DNA from: Rebecca billardiae RCC1528
Taxonomy: Eukaryota > Protista > Haptophyta
Direction: 5' to 3'
DNA: 64,000 bases
Assembly: GCA_965240325.2 (NCBI GenBank)
Contig: OZ251222.1
Span: 4,030,001 to 4,094,000, forward strand
Below, in pieces: positions 18,631 to 25,771 of the stretch. Position 1 is the stretch's first letter, and each line of letters starts with the position of its first letter. The position numbers and the translations under genes are program-made. The notes under the pieces are model-generated. The model was not told the origin of the DNA, ran no database searches, and saw only the letters and a program-made list of their open reading frames with translations.

Positions 18631-21065
18631 TCAGGCCAGCGGCGGCACGGCGCTCAGACCGCCAAGCGTCTGATTGAGGTTGTGCACCGGCGTCGGCCCC
18701 TTGGGCGAGGACGATGCCTTCTGGTTGTACAGCGAGTCGCACGAGCCCGAAGGCATCACCACATCCGCAGATCGGATGGGCAGCGTGGCCGCGGCAACCT
18801 CGGGCATCAGGCTGTTGTGCCGTGACAGGTTGGACGGACTCGCCACGGGCGCCGCCGCGTTGCCGCGCACACCCGAGCCGACCGTCGCCGCGCCGCTGGT
18901 GAGGAACGTGACGCCCGCGTTCGAGACGGACTGCCCCAGCCTGCGCGCCTCCTGCACGGCGAAGTACTCCTCGCCAATGTCGCCGGTCAGGTACTTGCCG
19001 TCAAAGACTGAGCCCTCGAACGTGCAGCCCTTCAGCACCGGGTTGATGTCCTGCACGGCGGACTTGAGGTCGTCGAGGTCCTGGTACACCACCCAGTCCG
19101 CGTTGATCAGCCGCGCGATCTCCGCCTCCTCGCGCCCGTTCGCGATCAGCTCCGACTTGGTCGGGATGTCGATGCCGTACACGTTGGGGTAGCGCACCGC
19201 CGGCGCGGCCGACGAGAAGAAGACCTTGTTCGCGCCCGCGTCGCGCGCCATCTGCACGATCTCGCGGCTGGTTGTGCCGCGCACGATCGAGTCGTCCACG
19301 AGCAGCACGTTCTGCGGCGAGTGGGGCGAGCGCGCGCGCGCAGGCGGGGCGTGAGCACGGCGGGCGCGGGCGGCTGGCTGTGCACTGCACTCGGCGCGCG
19401 CGGCGCACTCGGGGCCGGGACAGCGCCGCGCCGCGCGCGTGCGCACCCGGCCCTTGAACTCGGACTTGATCGTGTTGAGCTTGACGCGCACGCCCTTCTT
19501 GCGCGCCGCCTGCCCCGGCATGATGAACGTGCGCGCGATGTAGCGGTTCTTGATGAAGCCCTCGCGGTACGGCCGGTCAAGCGAGTAGGCGAGCGAGAGC
19601 GCAGACGTGCGCGCCGTGTCGGGCACCGGGATGACGACGTCGATCTCCTCCCACGCCGAGCCGAGCAGGCGCTTGATGCGCGCGGCGAGGTTGTCGCCCA
19701 TCCGCAGCCGCGCCTCGTACACCGGCACGCCGTCCATGATCGAGTCCGGCCGCGCGAAGTAGACGTACTCGAAGAGGCACGGGCAGAGCCGCGCGCCCGG
19801 CACGCACGTGCGCGTGATCGGCGGCCGGCCGCCCTTGGGGAAGAAGACGGCCTCGCCGGGGAACACGTCGCGCACGATGTCGAAGTTGTCGCCCGAGGCG
19901 CACGTGATCGTGTCGATCGCCACCGACTCGGACGCCACCGCGTAGTCGCACAGCCCGTGCGCCTGCTCGCGCGCGCCGTACACGATCGGCCGGATGCCGA
20001 GCGGGTCGCGGAAGACAACGACGCCCACGTCGTTGATCAGCACGGCGACGGCGTAGCCGCCGATGCACTTCTTGAAGACGGAGGAGCAGGCGTAGAAGAT
20101 CGCGTCCGCGTCGAGGTCGTCGGCGGGGTCCGAGCGCACCTTGGCCAGCGACTGTGCGACCGAGGGCGCAGCGTCGGAACCACCACGTGTCAGCGTGGGG
20201 CGCCATGGGCGCGCCGCGAGCGCGCGCGCAGGGAGGCGCACCTCGGAGAAGATGTTGAGCAGCAGCTCGGAGTCCGAGTTGGTGTTGATATGGCGGCACA
20301 TACCCTCCACCGAGTGCTTGAGCATGCTCGCGTTCGTCAGGTTGCCGTTGTGCGAGATGCAGAGGCCGTACCTGCACGCGCGCGCGCGCGCGCACACACA
20401 CACGGCCGAGCGCGCGTCTCGTAAGCTCGGCAGCGCGGCGCGAGGCGGGGCACGGGGACGGCGGGCGCGCGCACGCGCACGCGCCATTGCGTCCAGACCG
20501 CGTGGCGGTCGCACAGTCGCGCTGCGCGCAGCGCGGCTGGGCGAGGGCGCGCGCGCGCTCACGGGTAGTTGGTGTACAGCGGCTGCGCCTCGGCGCACGA
20601 CGAGGAGCCCGCGGTGGGGTAGCGGCAGTGGCCGATGCCCATGTGGCCCTTGAGCTGGATCATCGACTCCTGCGTGAAGACCGACTGCACCAGCCCGTTG
20701 TCTTTGCGCAGGTGCAGCCGCTTCTGCTCGCACGTCACCATGCCCGCCGCGTCCTGCCCACGGTGCTGCAGCACGGTGAGCGCGTCAAAGATCATCTGGT
20801 TGACGTGCTTCTGCTCGTCGGCGAGGATGACCGCGACGACGGCACAGCCACCGCGGACGCGGCCGAACGCGTGCAGCGTCGCCGAGGGACTGACGCCATA
20901 CTCGGCAAGCGTCCGCGAGTCGTCGTCCAGCTGCTTGCCCGCATACACCAGGCGCGCGCCACCCGCCGCGCGCAGGGCCAGCTGCCGGCGGACCTCGCCG
21001 ACCGTGGTATCCGCCTCAACAGCGATCGCGTACGTCCGCTCACCGCGCACGAAGATCTGGCGCAT
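18631..21065 (-). CDS. purF: Ubiquitin-like domain fused to amidophosphoribosyltransferase (glutamine PRPP amidotransferase), 4 exons
   Basis: Introns 20562-20372, 20241-20152 and 19446-19312. GATase motifs [38 protein letters not shown] and [13 protein letters not shown]. PRTase motifs [28 protein letters not shown] and YGIDIP. Codons 1-73 (21065-20847) are ubiquitin-like and end RVRGG; the Cys codon is 20846-20844. Confidence 0.95.
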
Positions 21066-21789
21066 CGTGGATCTAGTGGGGGTTGCACGCGCCGGCTGGA
21101 CGGCCGATGGTCCAAGGGCGCACGTTCGCGACGCTTGCGTCGTCTCTCCGCGTCAAGCTTTTGACGGACTCGATCGTGGACGTCGGGCGAAAAGGCAGCC
21201 GGAGGTAAAACGCACGTCGGATGCACGTGCCGAACCAGCACCGGGCCAAGCCGGGCTGTCCCACCCACGGCGCACCCACACGCACCTCACAAGGTGGGCC
21301 GTGGCTTGGCACACGTTCTGGTAATCATCAATGTTGACGATCATAAAAGCTCACCGTTGGCGAGCTAGTAGTGCCGCTCCGAATTCAGGCTCAGAGGAAT
21401 ATGATACCTGTAAAGTTTTGGTCGGCGCGGGTGATCATTATATGCGATTTTCCCGGACTGTCACTGGTTCCCCTGATCCGGCGGGAATCCCGATTTTTGC
21501 ATCGGCCGGTCCGGGTTTTAGGTTAGGTCGGCCCAGTCCGGGGCAGCTCTACTATTCCATTCGTCCGCGTCCTGGCTCCTGGACTCCTGCCGTACGGTCA
21601 TGCAGCACGTCGCGGGTCAGCACCGGAGATGTGACGACATCTGGACGAGTCACCCGGAGTGTGCCGCGGTTGGCGACGGACAACACTCTGAAACAGTCGC
21701 GGCACGGCCACGGGCACGGTCCCCGGCCCGGAGCCTGCCGACGGCGACGGTCACAGTGCTGACCAGCGTCACGGCAGCGGCGAGGCGTA

Positions 21790-22701
21790 TCATCGGAATC
21801 TCCAGTAGAGCACGAGGAGAACAATGCCGACGACGAGAACCACGGGTCCATACTTCTTCAGCAAGGCCTGCGTGTTCAGGTACTTCGCCTGCTTCGCATA
21901 CTCGCGGGCGCCGTCGCGCACTCGGCTCGACTTGGCCATGACGCCTGCGCGCGCAGACGCCGAGCACAAACGAGCGGGGGCGCGGCGGCCGTCGGCGCAG
22001 GCGTGCCCGCGCGACGGGCGAGGCGGGCAGGCGTCGGCAAGTACGACGCACGCGCGAGCACGCACTGTCCAGCCGCTCGCCCCGCCCCAGCACCTCCTGG
22101 ATGTTGGTCATCATGATCTTTTGAACGTCAGCGAGGTCCTCGTTGAGCTTGTTCACGTTGCGCTGTGCCCTCGTGTCCACGTACAGCCGCTTCGTCTTCT
22201 GGATGAAGGCGTCGAACTTGATGAAGGCGTACGGTCGCGTGGCGGAGTCCACTTCCCCTGCGTACAGCAGGTTGAACTCCTTCTGCAGCTCCTCCAGGTA
22301 GTTGAATGCGAGCCGCTTTGGGTAGGAGCGCTCAGTGAGCACCAGGTAGCACACGCCGCTGTCGATGATGTAGCTGGTGGCAGCGGCGACGCGGAGGGTC
22401 GGGCGGGGCCGGGGTGTGAGGGGAAGAGGGAGGGGGGAGCTCGTCCACACCAGCACAGGGCGCGGGCCACCGGATGACGCCCGCTGCGCTGCGCGGCGCA
22501 GCAGGCGCGAGGCGCGCACTGGAACACCTCGCTGCCCGACTCGATGGACAGGCGCGCGGGCGATGATGGGCTCAGCTGCTTGAAGATGCGCTTCGCCTGG
22601 TTCTTGTACACATCCAGGTCCCTATGGTACTTGTCGTCCTCCATGGACGCCGCCAGCGGCAGGCCGTCCACCACGCGCGCGATGATCGTCAGCTTCGGCA
22701 T
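21790..22701 (-). CDS. SEC22: Longin-domain R-SNARE Sec22, 3 exons
   Basis: MPKLTIIARVVDGLPLAASM, SYPKRLAFNYLEEL, RPYAFIKFD, NIQEVLGRGERLD and a C-terminal TM. Introns 22519-22374 and 22065-21945. Confidence 0.96.
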
Positions 22702-22930
22702 CGCTGCCAAGCCACGCCGACGCTGCCGCCGCCGCCACCGTTGTGCGGGTCTCGTCAATCTGGAAATCGGTTCAGCATGGCGGCGCCACTATCAGAATTC
22801 AGAACTCCTACTAGTACTATCTAACCAAACTAACTCAAATAGCAGCAGTATGGGGGTGGTAGTACTGCTGCTCGAAAAGTGCCGCCTTGCATCTTGCAAG
22901 CTCGACGGGCTTGTGGCGCGCGCTCGCGGC

Positions 22931-25771
22931 TCAGAGCGTCGCCGTGCATTCGAGCTGGACGACCGCGAGAGCCTCCGCCAGGCTACTTGCAAATGCCGCC
23001 GAGCAGCGCGAGACGCGCTCCTTGCACGCGCGCGCCGCAGCCTCAAACTGCACGCGCGCCGAGCAGACGTCGCGCTCGCGGTAGTACAGGCGGCGGCCCT
23101 CGTTGGCCATCCAGCGCGGCGGCAGCACGTCGCACGCGCACGCGCCGTCCTCGGCGGCAAACGCTTCGCGCAGCTGGCGCAGCTCCGCAGCCAGCTCCTC
23201 CTCGTCCGGCGAGTCGAGGCCGATCACGGCGGGCCCGCCGACGCGCGCGCCCGCGGGCGCGTCGCACACGCAGCCGCGCGTCGCCTCGACCTCCGGCCCC
23301 TCCGCGTCGAGGTACCGGCCGGCGTGCACGTAGAAGAACCAGGGCAGGCTCTGCGGCGGCACGCCCGCCTCCTGCAGCCACAGCGCCATCGAGACGTCCT
23401 CGCCCGCCACGCCGCCGGGCGCGCGCAGCCGGCCGGCGACGGCGCCGGCGGCCACCCAGCGCGCGAGCGGCGCTGAGAGTGCGTAGTGGATCCCCTGGTT
23501 GAACGGGGGCCACGCGCGCGCGCCGTACACCTCGGCGGGCACGAAGGCCTTGGAGCGCGGGTTGCGGTCGACGATGGCGCCGTGGCGCGCCGAGCCGATG
23601 TACGCGCGCGCCGACGCCTCGTGCGTCGCCGGGTGCTCCTCCAGCCGGCGCAGCAGCGTGGGCGTGTGCACAAACACGTCGTCGTCCGCCTTGAGCACCC
23701 AGCCGCTGGGGCACGCGCGCACCGCCCACGCGAGCGCGGCCAGCACCTTGCGCCACAGCTCCTGGTACGCGGCCGGGCCGTCCGCCACGTGCGCGAGGCG
23801 GACGACGTCGCCCGCGGCGTCGTCGGAGGGCGCGAGCGGCGGCGGCTCGGGCGTGCCGCTGCGGCCCTCCCCGACGAAGAAGCGCGCGGCCGCGTGCGCG
23901 CCCTCGCACCCCGCGCGCCAGGCCGCGCGCCCGCCGCCCCCCTCGGCGTCGCACGCGCCGTTCGTGTCCAGCACGCGGCCGGCCGCGCCGTGCGCGCCGC
24001 CGTCCGGTCTGAACCACGCGTGGCGCACGCGCTCGCGCCGCGCGGCGTTGCTCGGCGCGGTGATCACGGCGATGAAGACGGTCCACGGCTCGGGAGCGGA
24101 GGCTGCCCCGCCCGCGCTCGGGGGCTGCGCCGGCGCGCGCTCGGCGGCAGTCGGCGGCGGGAGGGCGCCGACGCCGCCGCCCTCCTCCGTCAGCGCGCGC
24201 GCGAGCGCGAGCCAGCGCATCCGCCGCTTGTCCGGGCCGCGCAGGCAGTCGTTGCTCAGCACGCGCTGGATCGGCGCGGGCGCGCTCGCGGCCGTCGCGT
24301 CCGCGAGCGCCTCGGCCTGCGCGCGCGTGCGCGGCACGGCGCCGCGCGCGTCCCGCAGCGTCCGCCACTCCGCGGCGCGCAGCCTGTCCGCGCGGCGCCA
24401 GAGCTGGCGCACGAGGCGTTGCAGGCGCTGCGACAGGCAGCCCGACTGCACGACCCGCGCGGCCCACGCCGCCGTCCCCGCCGGCGCCGCCTCGGCCGCG
24501 GCGAGCGCCTTGCGCGCGGCCGGCTCGAGCGATGCGCGCGGCCGCTGCGCGCACGCAGCCGTGAGCCGCCCATCCGCCGAGACGAGCAGCTCGAGCACGC
24601 GCGCGAACGGCTCGCGCGCGTACGCGAGCGCGGCGCGCGCGTTCGCGTCGATGTACGCGCGCTTCGCCTCGTAGTCCGCCAGCCGCAGCTCCGCGCTGCG
24701 CAGCGGCCCCGCCAGCAGCGCGCCCAGCTCGTCCGCGCCGCCGATCGCGTGCACGCCGCGCGGGTCAAAGAGCTGCGCGGCGCGCGGCGCTCCCCAGTAG
24801 ATCGGGACGGCGCGCGCGAGGAAGGCGTCGACGAGCTTCTCGGTGACCCACCACTCCTCGCGCGAGTTCTCGATCACCACGGTGTGCGTCGACTCGCGCA
24901 GGCACGCCTCGCGCTCCGCCGCCGACCACCTGCGCCCGTCCACGCCCGAGCCGCAGCCGCGCAGCGCCGCCGCCGCCGATCGCGCGCCCGCCGCGCCGGC
25001 CGGCTGCCCGCCAAACCGCTCCCAGATCGTGTGGCGGAGTTGGTGGCCCTCGAGCGAGCGCTTGCGCGAGAAGACGATCGAGACGGGCGCGTCCGCCGGG
25101 ATCGACTCGCGCGGCCGCTCCGCCACGGGCGCGCACACGGCGAGCTCGCACTTGCCCAGCGGGAAGGGCAGCACGGCGCTGACGCCGTCCGCGCGCGCGG
25201 CGCTCAGCAGACCTGCAGAGTGCGTGAGCACGACGTCGAAGTGCGCGCGGGTGCCGGGCTCCTCGACCATGCGCTGCGCGTTGGCGAAGCTCACGGACAG
25301 CGGCGAGACCGCCTCCGACTCCACGCGCAGCGCCACCTTGCAGTCCGCGCGCACGGCCGCGGCCGCCGCGAGCCTGAGGTCTGAGAAGACATCAGCGACA
25401 GTCGCCGGCCCCTCCTCGTCCTCGCGCGCGTCGAGCGCGGCGTCGTCGGCGGTGCGCGCGCCCTCGGGCCAGGAGGCGTTGTGGATCGCCACGCCGCTCG
25501 AGCGGAAGAGCTCGACGCCGTCGTACCGCGGCGCGTCCTCGTCAAAGCTGCCGTCGAGCACGCGCACCCATCGCACGCGCCGCCGCGTCCACTGCGGCTC
25601 GCCTGCTGTGCGCCAGTCCGCCGCCCGCGCGTCCTCCGCGGCGGGGGGGCCGAGGCGGGGCACGATCAGCGCGTTGGACGTCGCCGCCGCGCCATCGGCC
25701 TCCTCCCATGCCTCGTGCGACGCCGCGGCCGCGAGCAGCGCGCCGACGGCGACGAGTCGCACGACAGCCAT
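22931..25771 (-). CDS. Two-domain glycosyltransferase: GT10 (fucosyltransferase-like) + GT31 (beta-1,3-galactosyltransferase-like)
   Basis: N-terminal signal/anchor. GT10 signature VIENSREEWWVTEKLVDAFLARAVPIYWGAP. GT31 motifs RRERVRHAW, LKADDDVFV, WPPFNQGIHYALS and EDVSMALWL. Confidence 0.85.
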   Translation of the reverse strand: MAVVRLVAVGALLAAAASHEAWEEADGAAATSNALIVPRLGPPAAEDARAADWRTAGEPQWTRRRVRWVRVLDGSFDEDAPRYDGVELFRSSGVAIHNASWPEGARTADDAALDAREDEEGPATVADVFSDLRLAAAAAVRADCKVALRVESEAVSPLSVSFANAQRMVEEPGTRAHFDVVLTHSAGLLSAARADGVSAVLPFPLGKCELAVCAPVAERPRESIPADAPVSIVFSRKRSLEGHQLRHTIWERFGGQPAGAAGARSAAAALRGCGSGVDGRRWSAAEREACLRESTHTVVIENSREEWWVTEKLVDAFLARAVPIYWGAPRAAQLFDPRGVHAIGGADELGALLAGPLRSAELRLADYEAKRAYIDANARAALAYAREPFARVLELLVSADGRLTAACAQRPRASLEPAARKALAAAEAAPAGTAAWAARVVQSGCLSQRLQRLVRQLWRRADRLRAAEWRTLRDARGAVPRTRAQAEALADATAASAPAPIQRVLSNDCLRGPDKRRMRWLALARALTEEGGGVGALPPPTAAERAPAQPPSAGGAASAPEPWTVFIAVITAPSNAARRERVRHAWFRPDGGAHGAAGRVLDTNGACDAEGGGGRAAWRAGCEGAHAAARFFVGEGRSGTPEPPPLAPSDDAAGDVVRLAHVADGPAAYQELWRKVLAALAWAVRACPSGWVLKADDDVFVHTPTLLRRLEEHPATHEASARAYIGSARHGAIVDRNPRSKAFVPAEVYGARAWPPFNQGIHYALSAPLARWVAAGAVAGRLRAPGGVAGEDVSMALWLQEAGVPPQSLPWFFYVHAGRYLDAEGPEVEATRGCVCDAPAGARVGGPAVIGLDSPDEEELAAELRQLREAFAAEDGACACDVLPPRWMANEGRRLYYRERDVCSARVQFEAAARACKERVSRCSAAFASSLAEALAVVQLECTATL

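Follow-up and report, generated by a model that had tools for sequence, protein, structure and literature searches.

The 64,000-nucleotide stretch of the haptophyte Rebecca billardiae RCC1528 analysed here (GenBank assembly GCA_965240325.2, contig OZ251222.1, positions 4,030,001 to 4,094,000; hereafter the window, in whose own numbering positions are given unless another contig is named) carries on its minus strand a purF gene whose product, glutamine phosphoribosyl pyrophosphate (PRPP) amidotransferase (PurF), is preceded by a ubiquitin-like domain (UBL). The open reading frame (ORF) at 20559..21065 encodes 168 amino acids and a stop codon: residues 1–73 (20847..21065; MRQIFVR...GRVRGG) form the UBL, which is read straight into Cys74 and the glutaminase domain with no stop, intron or methionine between them. 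The Gly72–Gly73 codons (GGT GGC) occupy 20852–20847 and the codon of the catalytic Cys74 (TGT) 20846–20844, and this junction (20844..20852) holds the predicted scissile bond. The interval between the UBL and the Cys codon contains 0 stop codons, 0 ATG codons and 0 AG splice acceptors, and the ATG at 21065, the earliest start codon past an in-frame stop, lines up with Met1 of ubiquitin. The first-pass annotation of this DNA had placed UBL and PurF in a single exon uninterrupted by intron or stop, and the reading of the ORF bears this out.

The stop codon of the ORF, TGA, shares nucleotides with a GTGAGC splice donor, and purF continues over four exons, spliced at 20563/20371, 20242/20151 and 19447/19311 (all GT..AG), to give a protein of 672 amino acids whose alignment with full-length relatives is gap-free at every exon junction. 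After the UBL, the rest of exon 1 (20563..20846) encodes the N-terminal part of the class II, N-terminal nucleophile (Ntn) glutaminase, starting at Cys74 and ending in the split codon of Pro168, as recognized from alignments and from a ten-residue motif and GHCRYPTAG. Intron 1 (20372..20562; 191 nt, GTGAGC...TGCAG), supported by the gap-free exon junction, contains a compound (GT)n(GC)n microsatellite at 20375–20405, just upstream of the acceptor. The remaining features were placed by alignment: exon 2 (20242..20371), with the glutamine-site motifs HNGNLTN and NSDSE; intron 2 (20152..20241; 90 nt, GTGCGC...CACAG); exon 3 (19447..20151), which completes the glutaminase domain and begins the phosphoribosyltransferase (PRTase) domain; intron 3 (19312..19446; 135 nt, GTGCGC...CCGCAG), matched by a relative with an intron at the same position, which P0006 reads through; and exon 4 (18631..19311), with the PRTase domain and its 13-residue motif, a low-complexity C-terminal tail and the stop codon. 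All lie on the minus strand.

Introns 2 and 3 are in frame, their lengths being multiples of three without stops, so prokaryote-style ORF callers read through them; the ORF call P0001, which begins within intron 1 and crosses both, is a plausible-looking but wrong protein of 618 aa. The G+C content of the window is 72%. The C-terminal extension (~110 residues of low complexity, 18631–18960) ends with a conserved CDSL(F/Y)NQ...NL.QTL; it is found in the PurFs of the window clade (window, P0002, P0003 and P0006) and is absent from the Diacronema clade.

The part downstream of the UBL is a complete glutamine PRPP amidotransferase, with class II glutaminase and PRTase domains. Glutaminase motifs (26 residues together, plus NSDSE) and the PRTase motif are present; GATase_6 and GATase_7 were matched on the ORF call P0001, and GATase_6, GATase_7 and Pribosyltran on orthologues. 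Cys74 falls in an invariant alignment column, and the glutamine-site motifs (RG, RYPT, HNGN and SDSE) are likewise invariant across the alignments. The orthologue of Diacronema lutheri scores 518.6 bits against Escherichia coli PurF (1ECF) and 252.5 bits against Bacillus subtilis PurF (1AO0), and by these orthologue scores the PurF part is of the E. coli type.

The neighbouring gene upstream, a multi-exon gene also on the minus strand (21650–22758), encodes a longin SNARE that is Sec22/VAMP7-like (Pfam Longin, E = 3e-18; Synaptobrevin, E = 7e-7), and its end lies ~720 bp upstream of purF. Beyond it, at 22931–25771 (minus strand), a single ORF of 946 amino acids has a GT31 galactosyltransferase domain towards its C-terminus (Pfam Galactosyl_T, E = 7e-16, residues 624–809); its N-terminal half shows, by eye, a fucosyltransferase-like ...ENS...W.TEK... 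motif, for which Pfam gave no confirmation.

Conservation and origin of the fusion

Among 5.8 billion protein clusters, the closest proteins are those of pavlovophyte haptophytes. The first-pass annotation had proposed searching algal genomes and transcriptomes for a UBL joined to PurF and for conservation of the junction: a UBL ending in Gly-Gly stands directly before the cysteine in nine sequences, the window counted, and GG|C is invariant among them. The other eight are P0121, P0271 and P0272 (metagenome or Logan fragments, 72–83% identical to the window), P0002, P0004, P0007, D. lutheri KFE25_008513 (P0005) and Pavlovales sp. CCMP2436. The six residues ahead of the cysteine read GRVRGG in one sequence, GRLPGG in four, GRLRGG in three and GSLKGG in one. 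The tail originally described as RxRGG thus stands in its Gly-Gly but not in its arginine at position −3, which is replaced by Pro in four lineages and by Lys in one.

Two of these genes show how readily the fusion escapes annotation systems. The D. lutheri gene is intronless, a single uninterrupted genomic ORF. In the Diacronema clade, matches to PF00240 (gathering cut-off, 25.4 bits) reach 19.4 bits in D. lutheri and 23.3 bits in P0004, and P0007 gives none; the D. lutheri fusion is invisible in domain databases because its UBL scores below the Pfam threshold. For Pavlovales sp. CCMP2436, the public model of PurF (P0003; 555 aa) begins with MIFDAL and lacks the catalytic Cys. In the genome (GCA_026770615.1, MU631576.1; L001:3620–4240), a UBL with GG|C lies in frame just upstream of this model, and ATG-CAG, a 108-nt intron (GTGCGC...CAG) and then ATC TTC GTG restore the start MQIFVR. 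The public annotation of CCMP2436 is truncated.

The nearest unfused PurFs start with Met-Cys, and in the alignment their Met falls exactly where the fused sequences have their last Gly. A quick IQ-TREE search for the maximum-likelihood tree of the PurF portions unites the six sequences whose UBL is confirmed with one fragment with a missing N-terminus, as a clade on a long branch with a Shimodaira–Hasegawa-like approximate likelihood-ratio test (SH-aLRT) value of 100. This single clade is consistent with a single origin, and the fusion probably arose once, in an ancestor of the sampled pavlovophyte haptophytes. An exhaustive HMMER search with exon 1 against 1.84 billion representatives returned, among its top 150 matches, only P0121 and P0007 as sequences that span both parts, the others being polyubiquitins or PurFs. 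An exon-1 search of 90% clusters yielded nothing further but P0271 and P0272, both close relatives, and a search with D. lutheri residues 1–110 found no fusion outside pavlovophytes. Upstream extensions on other matches were rejected as unrelated ORF over-calls ahead of an internal Met-Cys.

In RNA libraries of relatives, some contigs run across the junction. L004 and L005, from two Joint Genome Institute (JGI) samples, contain a 5′ leader, the whole 623-codon UBL–PurF ORF without introns and a 3′ trailer, and are transcript-like, unlike the related CCMP2436 genome, which has introns. L008 (JGI 3300016802, encoding P0002) is also transcript-like and carries both UBL and PurF, but a C-run within its UBL has a 1-nt frameshift; at L008:67–145, the first ~17 UBL codons are out of frame with the rest, a shift that is either genuine or a fault of assembly. 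In the four lake-water metatranscriptomes examined, contigs ~86% identical to the window cover 20567–20942, crossing the junction, and their loose end runs on as ...QRLLF, as expected of the UBL. An exon-1 search over sequencing runs of any kind gave best runs with at most 6% of the exon-1 words. Such RNA libraries can hold DNA, and the junction-spanning contigs are supportive, not conclusive.

The ubiquitin-like leader

Residues 1–73 match Pfam PF00240 with E = 3.2e-10 (40.1 bits, profile positions 1–71 of 72), and in a phmmer search of the PDB the domain lines up end to end with ubiquitin. A profile built from the pavlovophyte UBLs matches the whole length of ubiquitin in the PDB (60 bits, E = 2e-15). 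The AlphaFold2 (AF2) model of the UBL, computed from an input alignment that contained ubiquitins, has a predicted local distance difference test score (pLDDT) of 85.9 and shows a β-grasp fold in strand-strand-helix-strand-strand order, with a flexible tail (residues 70–73) of low confidence; Foldseek relates it to ubiquitin with a template modelling (TM) score of 0.84–0.87 and a root-mean-square deviation of 1.5–2 Å. In an AF2 model of the full-length D. lutheri protein the enzyme is well modelled and the UBL is not (pLDDT <50), because only four alignment rows cover it. An ESM Atlas search returned generic ubiquitin-family leads alone, at scores that can also arise by chance.

Sequence identity to ubiquitin is ~42%. 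A two-residue deletion in the β1–β2 loop takes out Leu8, and a further deletion precedes β3 (three residues in the window UBL, 1–3 across relatives). Position 44 is Val in the window and Val, Leu or Ala across the UBLs, and position 71 is Gly in all. Towards the junction, the equivalent of ubiquitin Arg72 is kept in 8/9 sequences, Leu or Val at 73 in 9/9 and Gly75–Gly76 in 9/9, with Arg, Lys or Pro at 74, giving a conserved tail of G-[RS]-[LV]-[RKP]-G-G. The window UBL has one Lys, equivalent to ubiquitin Lys48, and the UBLs of four relatives have none; these Lys-free domains contain 10–12 Arg, and the rest of each protein has ~20 Lys to 35–39 Arg. The features that define ubiquitin proper—76 residues, seven lysines and the Leu8/Ile44/Val70 patch—are thus not those of this domain. 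By sequence and predicted fold, the leader is a ubiquitin homologue, that is, a UBL, and neither ubiquitin itself nor a source of it. An origin from FUBI, which had been considered on the basis of a likeness (a short β1–β2 loop and Gly71), was set aside, as the profile ranks ubiquitin top and places FUBI outside the best 60.

The leader has evolved faster than the enzyme behind it. Among relatives, identity to the window is 42–57% for the UBL and 77–86% for the PurF core, and Nei–Gojobori dN/dS for the three closest pairs is 0.30–0.38 for the UBL against 0.17–0.28 for the adjoining PurF segment, ratios that are rough because the extreme G+C bias compresses synonymous sites. Read from these alignments, the pattern is one of purifying selection on the fold and the tail, with none on the surfaces through which ubiquitin signals. 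The strong divergence from ubiquitin that the first-pass annotation had claimed is evident in the ~42% identity, the insertion–deletion differences and the 0–1 Lys.

Proposed maturation of the precursor

PurF glutaminase requires Cys as residue 1 with a free α-amine; in E. coli, maturation consists of Met removal alone, and B. subtilis PurF exposes Cys1 by shedding a short peptide from its N-terminus (PMC3261824). The end product predicted here, a Cys1 nucleophile with a free α-amine, is the same as in E. coli and in the B. subtilis and vertebrate enzymes (PMC3261824), whereas the place of the E. coli Met or of the B. subtilis–vertebrate short propeptide is taken by a folded 73-residue ubiquitin homologue, and the cut would be expected in trans, from a protease of the ubiquitin type. 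The short-propeptide, self-processing type of B. subtilis and vertebrates is not matched: the leader is a folded 73-residue domain, and the enzyme scores double for the E. coli type. As no Met stands before the Cys, Met removal cannot expose Cys1; and as Cys must be residue 1 with no preceding Met, we infer that a cut after Gly-Gly is obligatory.

We consider it probable that the gene encodes an obligatory UBL–PurF precursor that is cut after Gly-Gly by a deubiquitinase-type protease, freeing Cys1. A single diverged, almost Lys-free UBL and an E. coli-type PurF would be made as one chain, and a cut exactly after Gly-Gly would leave Cys as residue 1 with a free α-amino group. Retention of Arg72, Leu73 and Gly-Gly on a folded ubiquitin homologue suggests a ubiquitin-type protease acting in trans, which, by analogy with known precursors, would most likely be of the deubiquitinase type (USP/UCH-like or a dedicated UBL protease). 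Following the fusion, the UBL would have been constrained mainly for its fold and tail, that is, for cleavability. The enzyme is probably cytosolic, because the N-terminal UBL leaves no space for an N-terminal targeting peptide. This was also the core of the first-pass annotation, a UBL–PurF precursor requiring a cut after Gly-Gly, and the invariant junction, the absence of a preceding Met, the intact glutamine site, the E. coli-type enzyme and the contigs from relatives all argue for it.

Several points weigh against this proposal. Many general deubiquitinases contact ubiquitin at Leu8, Ile44 and positions 71 and 74, and the UBL is without Leu8, has Val, Leu or Ala at the position of Ile44, Gly at 71 and, in four lineages, Pro at 74; because it is changed at these contacted positions, cleavage by housekeeping deubiquitinases is not guaranteed. 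The cut of the precursor is predicted from sequence, and all of the junction-spanning RNA contigs derive from relatives rather than from the window organism. In addition, Ntn enzymes as a class often self-process (PMC9140057, PMC11947121).

Self-processing is the strongest alternative, although we regard it as unlikely. Here an N-to-S acyl shift would let the Ntn domain cleave the Gly-Cys bond by itself, with the UBL as a large propeptide that offers a conveniently flexible Gly-Gly end. This would accord with the autoprocessing described for Ntn enzymes in general, with the removal of a short peptide by B. subtilis PurF (PMC3261824) and with the lack of conservation at the tail position of ubiquitin Arg74. 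The enzyme, however, is of the type whose E. coli member has no propeptide and matures by Met removal, and the kept equivalents of ubiquitin Arg72, Leu/Val73 and Gly75–Gly76 fit recognition by a protease and would be needless for self-cleavage. We know of no precedent for self-processing among E. coli-type PurFs.

It is very unlikely that the UBL is instead a permanent N-terminal regulatory or interaction domain, on an enzyme that uses ammonia or has some other role. Uncleaved internal UBL domains are common in proteins, yet permanent UBL domains are typically without a Gly-Gly end, and the end found here is a linkerless Gly-Gly in 9/9 sequences. Although E. coli PurF with Cys1 replaced keeps its use of ammonia (PMC3261824), the Cys and all glutamine-site motifs of the fused enzymes are strictly conserved. 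A second, unfused purF of the same type was not among the D. lutheri matches in a search that was not exhaustive. Finally, an artefact—a mis-assembly or gene-model error joining a ubiquitin-like gene to purF, or a downstream start or splicing that omits the UBL—is highly improbable: the RNA support comes from relatives alone and L008 is frameshifted inside the UBL, but the same continuous frame recurs in independent assemblies from at least nine lineages, RNA-library contigs included, and with neither ATG nor AG acceptor ahead of the Cys codon no Met-Cys start is possible once the UBL exon is taken away, which rules out an alternative start or splice of that kind.

Known fusion precursors and possible roles of the leader

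The arrangement has the features of natural UBL fusions: one UBL at the extreme N-terminus, a Gly-Gly abutting the partner and conservation across species. In nickel superoxide dismutase (NiSOD), the mature enzyme begins with a catalytic residue, His1 of the nickel hook. Like the present fusion, algal ubiquitin–NiSOD (Sibbald et al. 2019, PMC6332867) has one N-terminal ubiquitin-family domain with a Gly-Gly end and an enzyme partner attached without a linker, shows a patchy distribution among algae and is readily missed by automated annotation. It differs in that the partner here is a class II amidotransferase, in that the UBL here has ~42% identity to ubiquitin, insertion–deletion differences and 0–1 Lys as against a near-canonical ubiquitin, and in that the UBL–PurF fusion is known so far from pavlovophyte-like sequences only. 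In FUBI–eS30 (FAU), ubiquitin–eL40 and ubiquitin–eS31, an N-terminal UBL or ubiquitin is removed after Gly-Gly by a USP-type protease, as is needed for the function of the partner (for FUBI–eS30 the protease is USP36; PMC8354635, PMC10611586). The partner here is a metabolic enzyme in contrast to these ribosomal precursors, the cut would create a catalytic nucleophile, and the UBL profile best matches ubiquitin itself in the PDB, with FUBI absent from the top matches.

A survey of ubiquitin fusions in algae names actin, NiSOD, ribosomal P1/P2, HMG-box proteins and others; PurF is absent from its text and fusion tables, and pavlovophytes are not mentioned (PMC6332867). We found no description of a ubiquitin– or UBL–PurF fusion in the full-text literature, a coverage that leaves out subscription journals. 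UBL fusion precursors such as ubiquitin–NiSOD and FUBI–eS30 are known, and what is new is the partner of the N-terminal UBL, an Ntn amidotransferase.

In the laboratory ubiquitin-fusion technique, as proposed here, a Ub–X fusion is cut by cellular deubiquitinases to expose a chosen N-terminal residue; the technique is an engineered tool, whereas the present case is a natural, conserved gene. Arendt and Hochstrasser, in 1999, reportedly fused ubiquitin to mature proteasome β subunits, the Ntn Thr1 of which was exposed and then became N-acetylated and inactive. That N-acetylation inactivates proteasome Thr1 is stated in a later source (PMC11947121, citing Arendt and Hochstrasser 1999), and it raises the question of how Cys1 here escapes acetylation.

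Met aminopeptidase frees Cys efficiently in the Met-Cys relatives, and the leader is therefore not needed merely to expose Cys. A neutral ratchet fits the data equally well: a ubiquitin fused in frame would have been cut by deubiquitinases anyway, the original Met codon lost, and the leader, from then on indispensable, left to drift within the limits of cleavability. Adaptive roles are possible and include delayed activation, shielding of the α-amine from N-acetylation and an aid to expression. A more elaborate version seems doubtful to us, in which a dedicated Lys-free leader is cut by a specialised protease after PurF has folded or assembled, giving a regulable zymogen with Cys1 shielded from co-translational N-acetylation or oxidation, and in which pavlovophytes may use UBL leaders on other proteins with defined N-termini. 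The first-pass annotation had gone further still, suggesting that the fusion couples purine flux to the ubiquitin system and that the released UBL serves as a conjugatable modifier. We find no support for either: a fast-evolving, almost Lys-free UBL fits a cleavable leader better than the first, and a Lys-poor, fast-evolving UBL made 1:1 with the enzyme looks like a leader rather than the second. Any connection of purine flux with the ubiquitin system is speculative.

For the annotation of pavlovophytes, the fusion calls for correction, with the D. lutheri UBL below the Pfam threshold and the CCMP2436 model lacking its nucleophile. PurF carries out the committed step in de novo purine synthesis, and a conserved UBL leader would add a third route to Cys1 beside Met removal and the short propeptide, within the literature covered, and would be a natural counterpart, on an Ntn enzyme, of the ubiquitin-fusion technique. 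The pavlovophyte genes also offer a system for asking how far a UBL can diverge—to no lysines, no Leu8/Ile44 patch and Pro at 74—and yet be cleaved, which protease cuts it, and whether the leader protects the α-amine of the nucleophile.

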